Origin: Obrimoposthia wandeli
Lineage: Eukaryota
Length of the DNA: 64,000 bases
NCBI GenBank assembly: GCA_977020255.1
Contig: CDROCS010005781.1
Coordinates: forward strand, 62,001 to 126,000
Direction: 5' to 3'
A program made the position numbers and the translations under genes. Each line of letters starts with the position of its first letter. The stretch's first letter is position 1. Under the pieces are notes generated by a model. It was given only the letters and a program-made list of their open reading frames with translations, was not told where the DNA came from and searched no databases. This document shows, piece by piece, positions 1-7,141 of the stretch.

Positions 1-1237
1 AACCTTTCAGGTTTTCACCACACTGTTCACGCAACAGGACAAAATCATAGGCCGCGCGGAAACGATTACTTTCAGCAGCTTCAGCGGCTTTCTTGCCTCT
101 TTTTCGTTCTAGGCGAGACTGCATATCCCAAATTTCTTTCATCGGAATCGTAAAACGCTTAGGAATAGAAGTGCGCTTCAGCTGTTGCTCGATGACTCGG
201 CTAGCGGCTTTATGCAAGGCTGGCTGAGGAGGAATTCCTTGCTCTAAAAATTCCGCTTGGACTCTTTGTAGAGATGGCCATAGTAAAGCCGCAAAGAAAT
301 AATAAGGCGTTACTGACTTGCCTGATTGAATACGCGTATCGGTATTAATCATGGTCTGTTCAACAAAGCGTGCAGCAAATTCATCGTCTGCCACGCACTG
401 CTCCGTTAACGGAAACAACTCACCAAATAGCTTATATTCACGCAATAAACGGTAGGTTACTAGAGCATTACCGGATAAAAACAGCTTCAAAACTTCTTCA
501 AATAAGCGCGGCGCAGGGATCTGCTCCATTAGCGGCGCCATCATTTCAATCGGAGCTTTAGTCTTGTGCTCTATTTCAAAATCCAATTTACCCGCAAAGC
601 GAATAGCTCGCAGCATGCGCACAGGATCTTCGCGGTAGCGGGTCTCAGGATCACCCATCAAACGGATTAATTTATCTTGAGCATCTTGATAGCCACCGGC
701 ATAAGACAGCACAGTAAAATCATCAACGGCGTAATACATAGCATTAATGGTGAAATCACGGCGCATAGCATCATCATCGATGTTGCCATAGACGTTATCA
801 CGTAAAATCATGCCGCTATCGCCAGTTTTAGCCTGGTTACTATTGTGCTCTTCTTTCGGAGACGTTCTGAATGTGGCGACTTCAATCACTTCGCGGCCAA
901 ACAAAACATGAACCAATTTAAAGCGACGGCCAATTAAGCGAGAGTTGCGAAACAGTTGATTGACTTGTTCTGGAGTTGCACTCGTCGCCACGTCAAAATC
1001 TTTGGGGTGTGCGCCCAACATGGAATCGCGGACACAGCCGCCTACAAGATAGGCTTGATAGCCCGCGCTATTTAAACGATACAGGACTTTCAGTGCATTC
1101 TCGCTCAGCTGACGACGGCTAATGCCGTGCTCTTTGCGCTGAAGAATTTGCGGTTTGATCTCATTATCCGCGTTTTTAGCTTTGCGGCCCCCCATTAAAG
1201 AAGGGAAGAAGCGCGCTACAGTATTAACTATGGACAT
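1..1237 (-). CDS. pcnB: Poly(A) polymerase I (3' end runs off the window)
   Basis: Absent from the ORF track. Manual translation from the ATG at 1237 gives MSIVNTVARFF...LKVLYRLNSAGYQAYLVGGCVRD...HPKDFDVAT...IGRRFKLVHVLFGREVIEVATFR. It lies downstream of cbrB, as in Pseudomonas. Confidence 0.95.
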   Translation of the reverse strand, partial: MSIVNTVARFFPSLMGGRKAKNADNEIKPQILQRKEHGISRRQLSENALKVLYRLNSAGYQAYLVGGCVRDSMLGAHPKDFDVATSATPEQVNQLFRNSRLIGRRFKLVHVLFGREVIEVATFRTSPKEEHNSNQAKTGDSGMILRDNVYGNIDDDAMRRDFTINAMYYAVDDFTVLSYAGGYQDAQDKLIRLMGDPETRYREDPVRMLRAIRFAGKLDFEIEHKTKAPIEMMAPLMEQIPAPRLFEEVLKLFLSGNALVTYRLLREYKLFGELFPLTEQCVADDEFAARFVEQTMINTDTRIQSGKSVTPYYFFAALLWPSLQRVQAEFLEQGIPPQPALHKAASRVIEQQLKRTSIPKRFTIPMKEIWDMQSRLERKRGKKAAEAAESNRFRAAYDFVLLREQCGENLKG

Positions 1238-1419
1238 CTATGGTTGCCTGAATTTTCGCGATTGCAGGGGAAAGGTACTTCAAAGAAGAACTTGCGCCTG
1301 TCGAGTATGATTATTGTTCGATATTAGTTAGTTAGCGAGTTTACATGATGGGTTGGCGCTTTCAAAGCACCTGTGGCTATAAAAGCCTTGCCTGTAAATA
1401 AAAGGGGGGTAATAAAGGA

Positions 1420-1728
1420 AGTAAAACTCAGGTTTGGCGATTGTTATTTTTATTATTGCCAAACCGAGATAAGTAAACCAACTGTTTTGAATACGCAGGA
1501 ACTAAAAGCTCCGTTATTATTCTTATTATATGTGTGCTAAGTGATGCTCACTTCGCACTCAAAACAACTGATTTTTCATTTTTCTATGCCTCTTTATTGT
1601 TTTTATTGTGAGACCACCTCTTCATGGGTGTTTTGATATTCATAAACGCGATTTTTATTTTTATTATTGCGTTTAACTTCAATCTTACGTTTTAGCTTTA
1701 TTATTTTTGTTAGTGCTTAACGTTATAT
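1420..1728 (-). ncRNA. CrcZ/CrcY-like A-rich sRNA candidate, copy B (distal, about 310 nt)
   Basis: No ORF. Starts about 12 nt below a sigma54 promoter and carries 5-6 AANAANAA-type tracts (AACAAAAATAATAA, AATAATAAAAATAAAAAT, AATAAAAACAATAAA, AATAAGAATAATAA, AATAATAAAAATAACAA). Ends in hairpin CTCGGTTTGGCA...TCGCCAAACCTGAG followed by TTTT. Ends are estimated. Confidence 0.7.
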
Positions 1729-1737
1729 TTAATATAT

Positions 1738-1785
1738 AGCCATAACCGTGCCAACTTTATAAAACTCTTTAAAATCAATGGCTTG
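1738..1785 (-). promoter_or_regulatory. Sigma54 -24/-12 promoter (TGGCACGGTTATGGCT, 1753-1738) plus IHF site (AATCAATGGCTTG, 1773-1785)
   Basis: Matches TGGCAC-N5-TTGC with a variant -12 element. The IHF site is an exact match to WATCAANNNNTTR. Confidence 0.85.
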
Positions 1786-1813
1786 AGTAATCTAGTGCTT
1801 TAGATGAACAACT

Positions 1814-1877
1814 TGTTACGCCAAAAGTGTTACCTGAAGTAATGTTCTCCCGTAACAAAAGTAACGATTAAGTAACA
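1814..1877. promoter_or_regulatory. Putative CbrB upstream activating sequences (TGTTAC x2, GTAACA x2, GTAACG x1)
   Basis: TGTTAC at 1814 and 1828, GTAACA at 1852 and 1872, GTAACG at 1861. TGTTAC/GTAACA subsites are the described CbrB boxes at Pseudomonas crcZ. Confidence 0.65.
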
Positions 1878-2087
1878 CTGTGTAAGTTTTTACCTAAAGT
1901 GAGCCACTTTAAGCCTTGATTGACGGATTTTGTAGTAAGTTTCTGAAGGTATAAAAGTCAGGTGCTGGTTGAGTGTTGGGTTTATTGGCGGCAATTTGGC
2001 CCAGAAAGAAACAAATTTAGAGGATTGAGGATTGAAGGAGTGTTAAGGACTTGATATTGGCGCTGAAGTGAGCGGAAAGCAATTAAC

Positions 2088-2112
2088 CACAGAGGGCACA
2101 GAGAACACAGAG
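2088..2112 (+). repeat. CACAGAG x3 with a 9-nt period
   Basis: cacagag-gg-cacagag-aa-cacagag read directly from the sequence. Confidence 0.9.
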
Positions 2113-2129
2113 AAAAAGCAAAATTGAAG

Positions 2130-2157
2130 GATGAATATGGAACGATGAATATGGAAC
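2130..2157 (+). repeat. Perfect 14-bp tandem duplication (GATGAATATGGAAC x2)
   Basis: Read directly from the sequence. Confidence 0.9.
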
Positions 2158-2221
2158 GGTGTTGCCTGTTTGATTTTAAAACTGAGAAGCGAGTAGGAGG
2201 TGAAGCAGGAAAGGGTAGATG

Positions 2222-2399
2222 AAGAACCCATTGCTTTACACTTCATTCTGGAGTGTAAAGCAATGTGTGCTTAGTGAGCCCGGGGTATTATTATTATTGT
2301 AAGCTCTTGATCAGCGTTATTATTTTTATTGCTGCCGATCTATTGTCATTCCGCTCTAATTTTATTTTTATTATCTGAGCAGTATTGTTGTTATTAATA
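2222..2399 (-). ncRNA. CrcZ/CrcY-like A-rich sRNA candidate, copy A (proximal to cbrB, about 180 nt)
   Basis: Lies below a sigma54 promoter. Has 4 A-rich tracts (AATAACAACAAT, ATAATAAAAATAAAA, AATAAAAATAATAA, AATAATAATAATA) separated by short stems. Occupies the position of crcZ. The 3' end is uncertain. Confidence 0.7.
2229..2265. terminator. Perfect 14-bp stem hairpin, probable 3' end of sRNA copy A
   Basis: CATTGCTTTACACT-9 nt loop-AGTGTAAAGCAATG. The U-tract on the minus strand is weak (GGTTCTT). Confidence 0.55.
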
Positions 2400-2409
2400 C
2401 TTTAGATAT

Positions 2410-2457
2410 AGCAGAGACCGTGCCAACTTTTAAAAGTCCTTTTAAATCAATGGCTTA
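2410..2457 (-). promoter_or_regulatory. Sigma54 -24/-12 promoter (TGGCACGGTCTCTGCT, 2425-2410) plus IHF site (AATCAATGGCTTA, 2445-2457)
   Basis: Consensus matches, and near-identical to the 1738-1785 module. Confidence 0.88.
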
Positions 2458-2476
2458 TGTAATGCGTGGAGAAGGT

Positions 2477-2506
2477 GGTAACAAATTGGCGCTCATATTT
2501 GTTACC
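2477..2506. promoter_or_regulatory. Putative CbrB UAS palindrome GGTAACA-N16-TGTTACC
   Basis: Inverted repeat about 50-80 bp upstream of the sigma54 -24 element. Confidence 0.65.
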
Positions 2507-2584
2507 TATAGAGAAGAAATTGGATGGTATTTGATACTTTAGTGGCGACTTATGACCGAAATTTGTATGGACAAAGCCTGAGCC

Positions 2585-3976
2585 TCAACTAGACTTTGTT
2601 GCTTTTTTGCGTGGAATGCCCAAACGCTGGCGACGTTCCCATAAGCATTTCCGCGAAACCCCTAATTTACGTGCTAGGTCGGTTTCATTCATGCCATCTT
2701 CGTTTTCCAGTACAAAGTGCATAAAGTAATCATCCAGAGAAAGATCCCCTTGATTGGTATCATTACTATTTATCGCTTCGGGCTCTAGTAAGTTTTCTTT
2801 CAGTGCTTGTGGTACGTACTGGTCAGGAGAAACATCAATGGCCATGTTCTCAGGTGTGATGTCATCACCATCAGCCAAGATCACGGCTCTTTCAATCGCA
2901 TTTTCAAGTTCACGTACGTTACCGGGCCATTGATATTGTGAAATCGCTTGGCGTGAAGCATCAGTGAGCAGCATGGTGCTGCGGTTCATTTTTTCACAGC
3001 TGCGCTGCAGCATGAATTCAGCCAGCTCAATCACGTCTTTGCCACGTGCGCGCAAGGGTGGCAGGTGCAGTTCTAATACGTTAAGGCGATAGTAAAGATC
3101 TTCACGGAACTCGGCTTTTGAGGCTAGTTCTTTCAGGTTTCTATGGGTCGCCGCGATTAAACGAACATCTACCTTTCTACTTTGCACAGAGCCAACGCGG
3201 CGAATCTCACCTTCTTGTAACACGCGTAATAAGCGCGCTTGTGCTTCAAGTGGTAGCTCACCAATCTCGTCTAAAAATAAGGTGCCACCGTCAGCAGCTT
3301 CGACTAAGCCTAAGCGTAACGTTGCAGCACCGGTGAACGCGCCTTTTTCGTGGCCAAATAATTCAGATTCAATCAATGATTCAGGAATGGCGGCGCAGTT
3401 GACGGATATCATGGGGGCATCTTTACGACGGCTTTGGGTATGTAGTGCGCGGGCGACCAACTCTTTACCGGTGCCGGACTCGCCTTGAATTAATACCGTC
3501 GCGTCAGTGGGTGCTACTTTGCTGATTTTGGAGAATAAATTTTGCATCAACTGGCAGCTGCCAATAATGCCGGTTACCGGATATTCTTTGGCAATTTCAT
3601 GCTGCAGCACTTCGTTGGTACGGCTGAGAGTGCGTTGCTTAAGAATACGCTCTACAGTGAGGAGCATTTCTTCATGATCGAAGGGCTTAGCAATATAATC
3701 GACGGCGCCTAGCTTCATCGCATCAACAGCAGATCTTAAGCTGGCATAGCTGGTCATGATCAGCACAGGAACCTCTCCCGCCAGCTCAATCAAATCAGTG
3801 CCATTACCGCCAGGAAGGCGTAAGTCACTGATGATCATGTCGTAATCGCTGAAGGTCAGGTCTTTTGCGATATGCAGAGAATCCGCTTCAAAAATTTCAT
3901 GGCCTTGGCGTTCTAATAAGCGCTTTACTGCTTGGCGAATAATCTTTTCGTCTTCAACGACTAAAATACGGCTCAT
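2585..3976 (-). CDS. cbrB: Sigma54-dependent response regulator CbrB (REC-AAA+-HTH)
   Basis: REC domain, GESGTGKE, GAFTGA, WPGNVRELEN, and C-terminal LGVSRKCLWERRQRLGIPR. Follows cbrA. Confidence 0.92.
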   Translation of the reverse strand: MSRILVVEDEKIIRQAVKRLLERQGHEIFEADSLHIAKDLTFSDYDMIISDLRLPGGNGTDLIELAGEVPVLIMTSYASLRSAVDAMKLGAVDYIAKPFDHEEMLLTVERILKQRTLSRTNEVLQHEIAKEYPVTGIIGSCQLMQNLFSKISKVAPTDATVLIQGESGTGKELVARALHTQSRRKDAPMISVNCAAIPESLIESELFGHEKGAFTGAATLRLGLVEAADGGTLFLDEIGELPLEAQARLLRVLQEGEIRRVGSVQSRKVDVRLIAATHRNLKELASKAEFREDLYYRLNVLELHLPPLRARGKDVIELAEFMLQRSCEKMNRSTMLLTDASRQAISQYQWPGNVRELENAIERAVILADGDDITPENMAIDVSPDQYVPQALKENLLEPEAINSNDTNQGDLSLDDYFMHFVLENEDGMNETDLARKLGVSRKCLWERRQRLGIPRKKATKSS

Positions 3977-6975
3977 TCGGATTTATCCTCAAGCAAATGA
4001 TTCTGAACTTTGGGTAAGCGTAAAGTGACACAGGTGCCTGCAGTATTTTTTTCAAATGCGGCGTCTGGTTCTAGGGTGCTTGGTAAAGCAGCGCTAGGCT
4101 GTGAATCTAATATGTGACTCGGTACGGGGCTATCAATACTGATATGTCCGTAGTGCTCTTCGATAATACTATAAACCAAGGCCAAACCAAGCCCGGTGCC
4201 TTTACCTACTTCTTTGGTGGTAAAGAAGGGGTCAAAAATATGATCGAGCTTATCTTCAGCTATCCCGCTGCCTTGGTCAACTACATGAATAATTGCTTGG
4301 TCTGGATCGACATGACCAAAAACGCGGATGCTGCTGAAATCAGGACTGGCATCGCGGGCATTGCCTAGCAGGTTAATAAACACTTGTACCAAGCGTTGAG
4401 AGTCGCCGACGACTTGCCAGTTTGGGTCGCATTCGTTGATGTATTCAATATCCCGACCTTCATTACTGAGGCGTAATAATTGAATCGCTTCATCAATGCA
4501 AATACTGATATAGACGGGTAGATGTTCTGTTGTTAGGTGGCCAGAATGAGAGAAATTCATTAATGACTGCACGATACGGGTGACCCGTTTCGTTTGCTCT
4601 TGAATTTGATTCGCCATGTCTAAGATTTCTGGATTATCAGTTTCATAGCGCATGCTTTGGGCCAAGCAGTCGATACCGGTAATGGGATTACCGATCTCAT
4701 GAGCAACCCCGGCCGCTAAGCGCCCAATGGATGCTAGGCGTTCGCTGTGCATCAGTTCTTCTTCGAGCATCTGAGTTTCAGTTTGATCTTCTACTAAGAT
4801 GACGGTACCGCCGGGCTGACCACCCGAGGCTTTAATAATCGACTTATGCAGGTTGTACCAATGTGGTCGCCCCTTTTGTTCAATGCGCTTTTTATGCTGG
4901 TGGATGGCATTATCGAGTAAAAACTCATTCAGCATGCTGCCCCAGGGTTCTGCGGCTGATGTTAGGCGCGAGCCGGTAACATCGCCGGGAGTAATTTCCG
5001 TTAACTCTTCCATCGCGGTATTCCACATCAGTACCTCACCCTCGTCAGATACTGAACAGACTCCGATAGGGAGGCGTTCAAGGGTTTGGCGGTGGTAGCG
5101 GCGTAAGTTATCCAGCTCACCTGCAAGTCCGCTTAAGCGATCGTGAAAGCCCTCAATGCGCTGTTCAATTTGATAAATATCTTCGCTTAACTCAGCGTTC
5201 GCTTGGAAAGGTAGGTTCCGGTTGATGATATCGTGAGCCACGGTGGGGCCCATTAATCCTGATAAATTGGCTTCTAAGCGAGTGCGCAAACGACGGAGTG
5301 CATAAGGGCGATCTTCATAGGAAGGTAAGCTCAAATCGGCCAGTGCCTGATGAACTTCTCTTTCCGCCACATAGCGTCCTAGCGGTTTACTGAGGGAAAT
5401 AATGATGTCATTGGAGTTGCCCGCAATAAGCGGCTTGCGACTTGGGCGCGATACCGTATCGACGGAGCAGGCTTCAGCGGCGGATTTTTCAGATTCTTTT
5501 TGGGTTGTCGTTAAGCTGACGATGACAAAGAGAACCAGATTAATACCAAAGCTTCCCATCGCGGCAACGTGCCAGTTATCCATGTTGGTGGCGGGTAATG
5601 GAATCGGGAATTCCCAGCCTAGGGTCAAATGAGAAAGTGGCAGTAATAGGGTATAAGCCCAGACGATAATACCAATGCTGAGGCCGGTAATCAGCCCCCA
5701 GCGGTTGGCTTTAGGCCAGTATAAAACACCGAGTACTCCGGGCAAAAACTGCATGGCGGCAACAAAGGCCAATATGCCGAGTAAGGTGATTTCAAGGTCT
5801 GCGCCAATGATGCGGTAAAAACCGTAAGCGGCCAGCAGTATGGCGCCAATTAGGTAGCGTCGCATCCATAATAGCCATTGGTAAAAATCTTGTTTTGGCC
5901 CCGGTTTGTAGCTAGGTAATACAATATGGTTTAAAAACATCGCCGCAGTGGCCAATGTCGTCACAATAATAACGCCCGATGCAGCGGCTAATCCGCCGAC
6001 AAAGGCCATGATAACCAATACTTCAGAATCAAGTGCCATGCCAATGCCCAAGGCATAAAACTCGGGTGGCACCTCAAGTTCCAGATAAATACCTGCCCAT
6101 AAAATAGGAGGCACCGAAAGGCTCATGAGTAATAAAAATAACGGCAGGCCCCAGCTGGCTGGGCGCAGTGCTTTTGGATTGAGGTTTTCGGTAAAGGTAA
6201 CGTGGAACATGTGCGGGGCGACGACGGCCGCGGCAAAGAAAACCAATAACAGGGTGCGCCATGGGCCTTCTTGTAAATTTGTTTGGCGACTAATCAACTG
6301 TTCCTGATTGGCGGCTAGCCAACTTTGCATATCCCCCGAACCATCAAAAACAAAGAATAACGCTGTGATTCCAAGTGCGGTAATCGCGATCAGTTTTAAT
6401 AGTGACTCAAAGGCCAGAGCGAATACCAGACCTTCGTGTTTTTCGCGTGGCGACACATGGCGTGCGCCAAATAAAATAGCGAAAACCACCATTGTGATAC
6501 AAAAGCCAAAGGCTAAGGTCGTAGAGGGAAGGTCGGCGTTGAGTAAGTGCATACTCTCGGCGACAGCAGCAATTTGTAAGGTGAGTAGCGGTAATGCCAC
6601 GGCCAAAGTAAAAAGCGTGACCATCACCCCCGCGAGACGACTGCGATAGCGAAAGGCAAACAAGTCTGCTAACGAACTGAGTTGATAGGTGCGGGTAATG
6701 TGCAGTATTGGCTTGAGCAATATGGGGGAGAGTACGAATGCCCCGCTAATGCCCATGTAATAGGCTAAAAAACCATAACCGTATTTATCGGCCATCGCCA
6801 CCGAGCCATAAAATGCCCAAGCACTGGCATACACACCTAAAGATAAAACGTAAACCACAGGATGGCGAACCCAGCGTTTGGGAACCCAGCCACGTTCAAC
6901 CACGTAAGCGGCCAAGAATAAGAAAAAGAGGTAGCCAAATACTATTAGACTCAGCTGAATCAGACTAAAGCTCAT
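3973..6975 (-). CDS. cbrA: Transporter-kinase fusion CbrA (SLC5/STAC-PAS-HisKA-HATPase)
   Basis: About 13 TM segments of SSS type, H-box LAAGVAHEIGNP, and DQGSG / FDPFFTTK / GTGLGL boxes. 4-bp overlap with cbrB. Confidence 0.92.
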   Translation of the reverse strand: MSFSLIQLSLIVFGYLFFLFLAAYVVERGWVPKRWVRHPVVYVLSLGVYASAWAFYGSVAMADKYGYGFLAYYMGISGAFVLSPILLKPILHITRTYQLSSLADLFAFRYRSRLAGVMVTLFTLAVALPLLTLQIAAVAESMHLLNADLPSTTLAFGFCITMVVFAILFGARHVSPREKHEGLVFALAFESLLKLIAITALGITALFFVFDGSGDMQSWLAANQEQLISRQTNLQEGPWRTLLLVFFAAAVVAPHMFHVTFTENLNPKALRPASWGLPLFLLLMSLSVPPILWAGIYLELEVPPEFYALGIGMALDSEVLVIMAFVGGLAAASGVIIVTTLATAAMFLNHIVLPSYKPGPKQDFYQWLLWMRRYLIGAILLAAYGFYRIIGADLEITLLGILAFVAAMQFLPGVLGVLYWPKANRWGLITGLSIGIIVWAYTLLLPLSHLTLGWEFPIPLPATNMDNWHVAAMGSFGINLVLFVIVSLTTTQKESEKSAAEACSVDTVSRPSRKPLIAGNSNDIIISLSKPLGRYVAEREVHQALADLSLPSYEDRPYALRRLRTRLEANLSGLMGPTVAHDIINRNLPFQANAELSEDIYQIEQRIEGFHDRLSGLAGELDNLRRYHRQTLERLPIGVCSVSDEGEVLMWNTAMEELTEITPGDVTGSRLTSAAEPWGSMLNEFLLDNAIHQHKKRIEQKGRPHWYNLHKSIIKASGGQPGGTVILVEDQTETQMLEEELMHSERLASIGRLAAGVAHEIGNPITGIDCLAQSMRYETDNPEILDMANQIQEQTKRVTRIVQSLMNFSHSGHLTTEHLPVYISICIDEAIQLLRLSNEGRDIEYINECDPNWQVVGDSQRLVQVFINLLGNARDASPDFSSIRVFGHVDPDQAIIHVVDQGSGIAEDKLDHIFDPFFTTKEVGKGTGLGLALVYSIIEEHYGHISIDSPVPSHILDSQPSAALPSTLEPDAAFEKNTAGTCVTLRLPKVQNHLLEDKSE

Positions 6976-7141
6976 CGGGGCCTCGTTTGAATTCTACCCA
7001 GATATAAACCGCGATTAATAAAAACCACAATGCAAAGGGGTGATACCAAGTGCCGTTAGGCGCTAGCCACCAATCAATGATAACGGGTGAGAAAATATAC
7101 AATCCCACTACCAATAGCAGCGAGACTCGATAATCGTACAT
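6965..7141 (-). CDS. cbrX: CbrX small membrane leader peptide (58 aa)
   Basis: Absent from the ORF track. Translates as MYDYRVSLLLVVGLYIFSPVIIDWWLAPNGTWYHPFALWFLLIAVYIWVEFKRGPDEL, with its stop overlapping the cbrA start by 11 nt. Resembles Pseudomonas CbrX. Confidence 0.85.
   Translation of the reverse strand: MYDYRVSLLLVVGLYIFSPVIIDWWLAPNGTWYHPFALWFLLIAVYIWVEFKRGPDEL

Follow-up and report, generated by a model that had tools for sequence, protein, structure and literature searches.

Does the long gap between cbrB and pcnB in an Oleispira-like bacterium encode two RNAs of the kind that Pseudomonas encodes at the same place as CrcZ? The question arises from the window, a stretch of 64,000 nucleotides (nt) filed under Obrimoposthia wandeli (assembly GCA_977020255.1, contig CDROCS010005781.1, positions 62,001 to 126,000; contig C5781 below), which is densely coding, Oleispira-like bacterial DNA within a mixed assembly of 1.35 Gb and 6912 contigs. 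A first-pass annotation, made from the sequence alone, had placed in the gap two tandem CrcZ-like sponge RNAs, each behind its own promoter. The minus strand of the window carries, in order, a cbrX-like open reading frame (ORF) of 58 amino acids (aa), cbrA, cbrB, a gap of 1347 nt (window 1238-2584), and pcnB, and the gap contains one promoter module twice, each copy followed by a predicted small RNA (sRNA), the short sRNA1 after promoter P1 and the long, pcnB-proximal sRNA2 after promoter P2. We conclude that two real sRNA genes very probably exist in the gap, and we consider it likely that they are separately transcribed CrcZ-like RNAs, driven by CbrB and sigma-54, that act as sponges for Hfq and Crc in carbon catabolite control.

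Each promoter module consists of CbrB-type boxes, an exact match to the IHF consensus WATCAANNNNTTR, and a sigma-54 promoter of the form TGGCAC-N7-GC. A repeat search detected the duplication as a 67-nt direct repeat (1725-1791 and 2397-2463) with 78% identity, and the two modules that the first-pass annotation had read into a gap of 1.35 kb are thus present, as are the exact IHF sites, which it had put 20 bp upstream and which each lie 19 nt upstream of their -24 element. The composite pattern of IHF half-site and -24/-12 element matched twice in the 64 kb of the window, against 0.06 matches expected by chance, and two matches occurred in 0 of 100 shuffled sequences; when the pattern was run over the whole 1.35-Gb assembly, the matches besides the two true sites were mostly due to chance. 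The TGTTAC and GTAACA boxes lie upstream, where they had been predicted, and are identical to the CbrB subsites known from P. putida as F (TGTTAC) and R (GTAACA) (PMC6296734). The layout of CbrB site, IHF site, and GG-N10-GC promoter also agrees with that of crcZ and crcY (PMC6296734). Both predicted modules appear, by their sequence, to unite the elements that define such genes functionally, namely, a sigma-54 promoter, an IHF site, and upstream CbrB subsites. In related loci, P2 is more conserved than P1: of nine loci from relatives with CbrB identities down to 74%, all retain a full -24/-12 match at P2 and seven retain one at P1.

The DNA downstream of each promoter is marked by A-rich tracts. 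The minus strand of the gap contains the motif AANAANAA 27 times, compared with 3.7 +/- 2.2 times in dinucleotide shuffles (maximum of 12 in 1000), and its reverse complement occurs once, giving a strand asymmetry of 27 to 1. The matches form nine tracts, each 11-17 nt long, of which four follow P1 and five follow P2; nine tracts of at least 11 nt in the two RNAs compare with 0.38 expected (4 and 5 against 0.1 and 0.4 when the RNAs are taken separately). With 5' ends predicted to lie 12 nt past the -12 C, the transcripts would be about 188 and 310 nt long, close to the 180 and 310 nt first proposed. In the predicted fold of sRNA1, three hairpins display one A-rich tract apiece in loops of 18-20 nt, and a terminal hairpin and a U-rich tail complete the structure; the minimum free energy (MFE) of -42.5 kcal/mol corresponds to a z score of -5.1 relative to shuffled sequence. 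For sRNA2, in which all five tracts are placed in loops, the MFE is -69.9 kcal/mol (z score, -6.0). Several of the AANAANAA motifs are thus predicted to be unpaired, both in the MFE and in the consensus structures. No conserved ORF was found in either RNA, in the ORF listing or in the alignment of relatives, and the RNAs accord with the earlier description of ORF-free transcripts with several A-rich tracts. A 67-aa ORF on the minus strand (2043-2246) was rejected as coding, as it lies within the unconserved, hypervariable spacer between the sRNA genes; that spacer also holds short tandem repeats, such as CGTTCCATATTCAT in two copies. Separately, a 15-nt motif that is not A-rich, UCACUUAGCACACAU (minus strand, 1530-1544 and 2263-2277), is common to both sRNAs with 93% identity. 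It sits in the 5' flank of the terminator in sRNA1 and inside the central stem-loop in sRNA2, and its sharing is probably a trace of duplication.

Conservation was assessed in nine metagenomic or genomic relatives, whose CbrB proteins are 92% to 74% identical to that of the window, together with a GTDB species representative (L100) at 91%. A protein search for related loci in genome contigs was dominated by NtrC-family paralogues, and five true CbrB loci were among its matches. In all compared relatives, cbrA and cbrB are followed by a 1.1- to 1.44-kb gap and then pcnB, and all but one have the 58-aa ORF. Both modules recur in every compared relative with promoter, IHF core, half-sites, number and order of tracts, and both terminal hairpins. 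Identity to close relatives is 0.79 for sRNA1 and 0.80 for sRNA2, 0.71-0.72 for the two promoter regions, and 0.36 for the spacer, the length of which varies widely and part of which is deleted in some strains. Consensus structures computed with RNAalifold retain the hairpins, and compensatory double changes are observed in 20 of 28 consensus pairs of sRNA1 and in 21 of 50 of sRNA2; in the sRNA2 terminator, four compensatory sequences support each of 4 of the 10 stem pairs. We conclude from the conservation and the compensatory changes that both genes are under purifying selection as structured RNAs and that, judged by its sequence, the short sRNA1 is not a relic.

Marine RNA libraries contain sequence from the locus. 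Window positions 801-3000 were compared with Logan contigs of four metatranscriptome studies from the sea, and contigs of all four studies cover approximately 1113-1763, which includes sRNA2, while none lies on cbrB or on the body of pcnB. Contig depths summed for run X1 were 825-1240 over the core of sRNA2 (1541-1688), 52-66 over sRNA1 (2207-2354), and 0-6 over the spacer, cbrB, and pcnB. One sRNA2 contig ends at 1715, where it is joined straight to an Illumina adapter, and another ends at 1722, both near the predicted start at 1727. Contigs covered sRNA1 in one study only, that of run X1. A word search with sRNA1 alone found its words in RNA libraries of four studies, although the words were few and the signal weak, and run X3 held 4 of 14 sRNA1 words, again weak evidence, but no contig over sRNA1. 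Some low-depth X1 contigs jump within the spacer, from 2067/2069 to 2214 and from 1908 to 2003.

Both crc and hfq, the presumed partner genes that the first-pass annotation had named, were found. The contig of the window itself carries hfq, 54 kb upstream. For a 263-aa protein of the Oleispira-like reference genome G295, the top match in the PDB is P. aeruginosa Crc (4jg3, 263 bits), whereas true exonucleases III scored at most 173 bits against the same protein; this Crc orthologue is 42% identical to a putative Pseudomonas Crc, chosen by its length of 259 aa. The window's assembly (G000) contains crc copies that are 96-97% identical to the Crc of G295, and rpoN was found in the relative G295 only. 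Several bacterial genomes are present in the assembly (contigs C4441, C1564, C5705, C3739, C578, C506, C1760, and C253), which holds six distinct hfq genes. The crc copies just mentioned are two in number and Oleispira-like, and the assembly must therefore combine at least two close Oleispira strains.

These elements can be assembled into a model. When preferred carbon is low, CbrA would phosphorylate CbrB, and CbrB bound at the TGTTAC/GTAACA boxes, aided by an IHF-induced bend in the DNA, would cause sigma-54 RNA polymerase to fire from P1 and P2. The resulting RNAs would present four and five (AAN)n tracts of 11-17 nt, mostly in 18- to 20-nt hairpin loops. Hfq binds (ARN)n sequences, and one (AAN)4-6 tract has approximately the size of the distal face of one Hfq hexamer, such that, with Crc as cofactor, up to four plus five sites might be offered. 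Titration of Hfq/Crc by the RNAs would free A-rich target mRNAs from translational repression. The long, pcnB-proximal RNA would be the positional orthologue of CrcZ, and the short RNA would be a diverged tandem paralogue.

Several observations weigh against this model. The Rfam CrcZ model (RF01675) scored 16.0 bits against sRNA2 (E = 0.4; window 1397-1667, minus strand), where the gathering threshold is 95 bits, and a low-threshold scan of positions 1-6000 with the same model gave no match on sRNA1. The -12 element of P1 is degenerate in L095 and L096 (TTGT/TTGA), in which TGGCAC is kept, and the U-tract of the sRNA1 terminator is poor in this strain (UCUUCAUCU), where relatives have CUUUAUUUA 3' of the terminal stem. 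Run X1 is flagged as possibly DNA, although its very uneven depth profile argues that it is RNA. The contigs show neither strand, exact ends, nor true abundance, and those of all four studies pass the predicted sRNA2 terminator and stop 40-120 nt inside pcnB, so that the 3' end of sRNA2 is not settled; the overlap may come from read-through, from a pcnB leader subject to attenuation, or from contigs merged during assembly with transcripts of the promoter at 1338-1365. The crc copies lie on other contigs of the mixed assembly, and their tie to this exact strain is by identity alone. Finally, dependence on CbrB and RpoN, binding of Hfq and Crc, and the physiological output are steps that we infer from the sequence.

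The Rfam result bears on the name of the RNAs. In positive controls, the CrcZ model passed the gathering threshold in 4 of 20 scanned loci, all of Pseudomonas type, with 307-350 bits, and the equivalent RNAs of other sampled families scored 23-66 bits. The model fails on both RNAs of the window, and "CrcZ-like" therefore denotes architecture and position rather than membership in the curated family: position, promoter type, CbrB subsites, and tracts bear out the label given in the first-pass annotation, and the Rfam CrcZ model does not. At gathering level, no Rfam family matched anywhere in the 64-kb window. The mir-1, snoZ30a, and sR14 matches in the low-threshold scan of positions 1-6000 were attributed to chance, the mir-1 match being the sRNA1 terminator hairpin. 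In four Pseudomonas-type loci (L098, L115, L121, and L133), the Rfam family P36 ("Pseudomonas sRNA P36") matches approximately 95-100 nt upstream of CrcZ, inside the crcZ enhancer/promoter, and P36 may describe the crcZ promoter rather than a separate RNA.

If only the long, pcnB-proximal RNA were the working equivalent of CrcZ, the short copy would be a decaying duplicate with little or no function. Such decay would suit the coverage of sRNA1 in the contigs of one of four runs, at a depth 10-20 times below that of sRNA2, as well as its weak terminator U-tract in this strain, the non-GC -12 element of P1 in L095 and L096, and the absence of any Rfam signal. However, sRNA1 is as conserved as sRNA2 next to a spacer that has decayed, it retains all four A-rich tracts, and its stems carry the compensatory changes given above. 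The short type with the AUUGCUUUA hairpin also persists in Bermanella and Oceaniserpentilla, and sRNA1 words, albeit weakly, are found in RNA runs of four studies. We consider a decaying sRNA1 unlikely. The weak sRNA1 terminator could also belong to a single transcription unit, in which P1 or read-through from cbrB gives a long precursor that is processed into both RNAs and P2 is minor. Part of the CrcZ in P. putida arises by processing of a cbrB-crcZ cotranscript, and the RNA contigs here also traverse the sRNA2 terminator. Against one precursor, P2 is the better conserved promoter and has a full IHF site and five CbrB half-sites, the contig depth drops to 0-6 over the spacer compared with 52-66 and up to 1240 over the RNAs, and the hypervariable spacer lacks part of its sequence in some strains. 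We regard a single unit as quite unlikely.

It is also conceivable that both RNAs are real but work as base-pairing sRNAs or as cis-acting leaders that tune pcnB rather than as Hfq/Crc sponges. The contigs that connect sRNA2 with the 5' end of pcnB would fit a leader, and the conserved UCACUUAGCACACAU shared by the two RNAs could be a seed or a processing site. The dominant conserved feature is nonetheless the set of nine loop-displayed (AAN)4-6 tracts, and a conserved sigma-70-like pcnB promoter lies downstream of the sRNA2 terminator. The two to four module copies of relatives (see below) fit the dosage of a titrator better than a leader, and the family scan, in which the CrcZ gathering score was reached in Pseudomonas-type loci only, also counts against this alternative, which we judge very unlikely. 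The reading of two separately transcribed sponge RNAs is therefore the one that we carry forward.

Table 1. Features of the cbrB-pcnB region in window coordinates
Feature	Position	Strand	Remarks
Enhancer 1, GTAACA-N16-TGTTAC	2478..2505	-	Two CbrB-type half-sites; kept in alignment of relatives
IHF site 1, AATCAATGGCTTA	2445..2457	+	Exact WATCAANNNNTTR; TTGAT core kept in relatives
Sigma-54 promoter P1, TGGCACGGTCTCTGC	2411..2425	-	-24 GG / -12 GC; full -24/-12 match in 8/10 related loci
sRNA1 (short, ~188 nt)	2212..2399	-	After P1; predicted start 2399
sRNA1 (AAN)n tracts	2385-2395, 2362-2372, 2317-2330, 2288-2298	-	Last three in predicted hairpin loops
sRNA1 terminal hairpin, 24 bp	2222..2272	-	Then U-rich tail; inverted repeat and covariation
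Spacer between sRNA genes	1878..2211	-	Hypervariable, C/T-rich, short tandem repeats; 36% identity to close relatives, 14% to distant
Enhancer 2: TGTTAC, GTTAC, TGTTAC, GTAACA, GTAACA	1814..1877	-	Five CbrB-type half-sites; strongly conserved block
IHF site 2, AATCAATGGCTTG	1773..1785	+	Exact WATCAANNNNTTR; pattern match
Sigma-54 promoter P2, TGGCACGGTTATGGC	1739..1753	-	-24 GG / -12 GC; kept as TGGCACG-N6-GC in 10/10 related loci
sRNA2 (long, ~310 nt)	1420..1727	-	After P2; predicted start 1727
sRNA2 (AAN)n tracts	1698-1711, 1652-1668, 1594-1607, 1514-1527, 1441-1457	-	All in predicted loops
sRNA2 central stem, 25 bp	1475-1498 / 1551-1574	-	
sRNA2 terminator, stem CUCGGUUUGGC / GCCAAACCUGAG	1421..1468 (hairpin 1427-1468)	-	Then UUUUAC; fifth A-rich tract in loop
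Sigma-70-like promoter, TTGAAA-N16-TAAACT	1338..1365	-	Probably for pcnB; within conserved alignment block, downstream of sRNA2 terminator
pcnB, poly(A) polymerase I, 5' part	1..1237	-	Continues beyond window edge; TIGR01942, 494 bits
cbrB	2585..3976	-	Sigma-54-dependent response regulator/activator, 463 aa
cbrA	3973..6975	-	1000-aa sensor kinase: long membrane N terminus, then PAS, HisKA, HATPase
cbrX-like 58-aa ORF	6965..7141	-	11-nt overlap with cbrA start; ORF listing

The protein-coding neighbors of the gap are collected in Table 1. The CbrB of the window is 91-97% identical to proteins named as Oleispira in public sources and 62-65% identical to Pseudomonas CbrB, and CbrB orthologues carry the CbrB annotation in some public sources. 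The 58-aa ORF, the length and position of which are kept in 8 of 9 fetched related loci, matched nothing in a Pfam search; it resembles cbrX, a small ORF upstream of cbrA in Pseudomonas putida, and was named accordingly. The order cbrA, cbrB, and then pcnB is unchanged in all related loci.

The distribution of the locus was surveyed in the GTDB order to which Pseudomonas belongs. Of 301 evenly sampled genomes of that order, 229 encode a CbrB orthologue (E <= 1e-130), and eight genomes were named through exact protein matches. In the downstream regions of 40 such genomes, a sigma-54 promoter was found in 39 and clustered A-rich tracts in all 40; pcnB lay within the fetched stretch in 37, and the position of the RNA genes directly downstream of cbrB and before pcnB is thus shared by the window, the nine related loci, and 37 of the 40 sampled Pseudomonadales regions. 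Whereas a single module was present in 32 of the 40, every sampled genome with a CbrB at least 71% identical to that of the window has several (seven genomes, two to four copies). Two tandem modules are found in the Oleispira-like G295, Bermanella marisrubri, Oceaniserpentilla sp., and Bacterioplanes sanyensis, three in Thalassolituus maritimus and in a metagenome-assembled genome of Thalassolituus sp., and four in an uncultured Thalassolituus sp. (L105); many of the Thalassolituus copies terminate in a clean GC stem and U-run. The tandem layout is therefore common to a clade of marine hydrocarbon degraders. The pair that the first-pass annotation had described stands, as far as sequence can tell, but it is not peculiar to the lineage of the window, since the seven genomes of this group and Marinobacterium sediminicola also have tandem copies.

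Two of the four copies in L105 are almost identical, including the enhancer (L101, L104, and L130 were noted as other multicopy loci), and the two near-identical copies of M. sediminicola stem from an independent recent duplication; duplication of the locus therefore recurs and is ongoing. RNA length varies as well. In L108 (G036:C1:518122-521022), from one sampled Pseudomonadales genome, one sigma-54 promoter downstream of cbrB precedes a stretch of approximately 830 nt (gap positions of about 500-1330) in which about 20 (AAN)n tracts and two strong terminators lie, and the RNA resembles a giant form of the sponge; in L117, approximately 11 tracts fall within some 330 nt. Searches of G295 with the promoter pattern and by BLAST with the whole locus revealed no unlinked copy. 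A third IHF plus sigma-54 match in that genome is followed by no A-rich tracts, and every frame of the opposite strand there contains a stop; it was set aside as most likely an intragenic chance match.

CbrAB has been stated to be exclusive to Pseudomonadaceae (PMC6296734). A search of the open-access literature, with subscription journals outside its scope, returned no relevant paper that joins CrcZ or CbrB with Oleispira, Thalassolituus, Alcanivorax, Marinobacter, Halomonas, or Oceanospirillales; one Thalassolituus proteomics paper gave CbrA abundance only. The RNAs described here are unannotated, are not detected by Rfam, and belong to a lineage in which the open literature holds no prior description of the system. 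Whether the circuit of CbrAB, sigma-54, and A-rich sponge extends beyond Pseudomonas, as a trait ancestral to most GTDB Pseudomonadales whose capacity is tuned by copy number and length, is a proposal that we hold in even balance. The ancestral range may also take in marine Oceanospirillaceae, Cellvibrionaceae-like, and Marinobacterium lineages. Sponge capacity appears to be tuned either by tandem arrays of two to four genes, as in the obligate hydrocarbon degraders Oleispira and Thalassolituus, or by RNA length, as in the one genome with approximately 830 nt and 20 tracts.

The findings suggest that marine oil-degrading bacteria also run the CbrAB/CrcZ carbon-choice circuit of Pseudomonas, with its RNA genes in tandem. 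Oleispira and Thalassolituus are key degraders of oil in cold water, and if the proposal of an ancestral circuit with tuned capacity holds, the RNAs would set the substrate hierarchy, alkanes included, of the bacteria whose blooms follow oil spills. In P. putida, Crc/Hfq is a repressor of the alkane pathway, and the sRNAs are therefore candidates for a switch that times the use of hydrocarbons. Because Rfam does not detect them, such RNAs are probably missed by Rfam-based annotation, a gap that a broader covariance model would close. Moreover, dosage in protein-sponge RNAs could be studied along the natural series that these repeated, independent tandem duplications form.

Among known systems, the closest is CrcZ of Pseudomonas (RF01675), a CbrB- and sigma-54-driven RNA that sequesters Hfq/Crc and is likewise encoded between cbrB and pcnB. 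The likeness extends to the sigma-54 promoter with IHF site and TGTTAC/GTAACA subsites, to the synteny of cbrX-like ORF, cbrA, cbrB, sRNA gene or genes, and pcnB, to several AANAANAA tracts predicted to be unpaired, to a terminal hairpin and the lack of a conserved ORF, and to the presence of crc and hfq in the assembly (the latter on the contig of the window) and of rpoN in a close relative. Unlike CrcZ, which is a single gene of about 400 nt with CA-rich tracts in Pseudomonadaceae, the locus described here has two tandem genes of 188 and 310 nt with AU-rich tracts (AAUAAAAAUAA) in a host of the Oceanospirillaceae. With CrcY in P. putida and Azotobacter and CrcX in P. syringae, other genomes also have several A-rich sponges under CbrB control, which presumably arose by duplication and act together. 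Those paralogues are unlinked to cbrB, whereas the copies here stand head to tail within a single intergenic gap, and each has an enhancer of its own. Adjacent duplicate sRNA genes, each with a copy of the same regulated promoter, are likewise found in PrrF1/PrrF2 of P. aeruginosa and OmrA/OmrB of E. coli; those pairs are base-pairing sRNAs under Fur or OmpR, whereas the tandem pair between cbrB and pcnB would be protein sponges under a sigma-54 activator.

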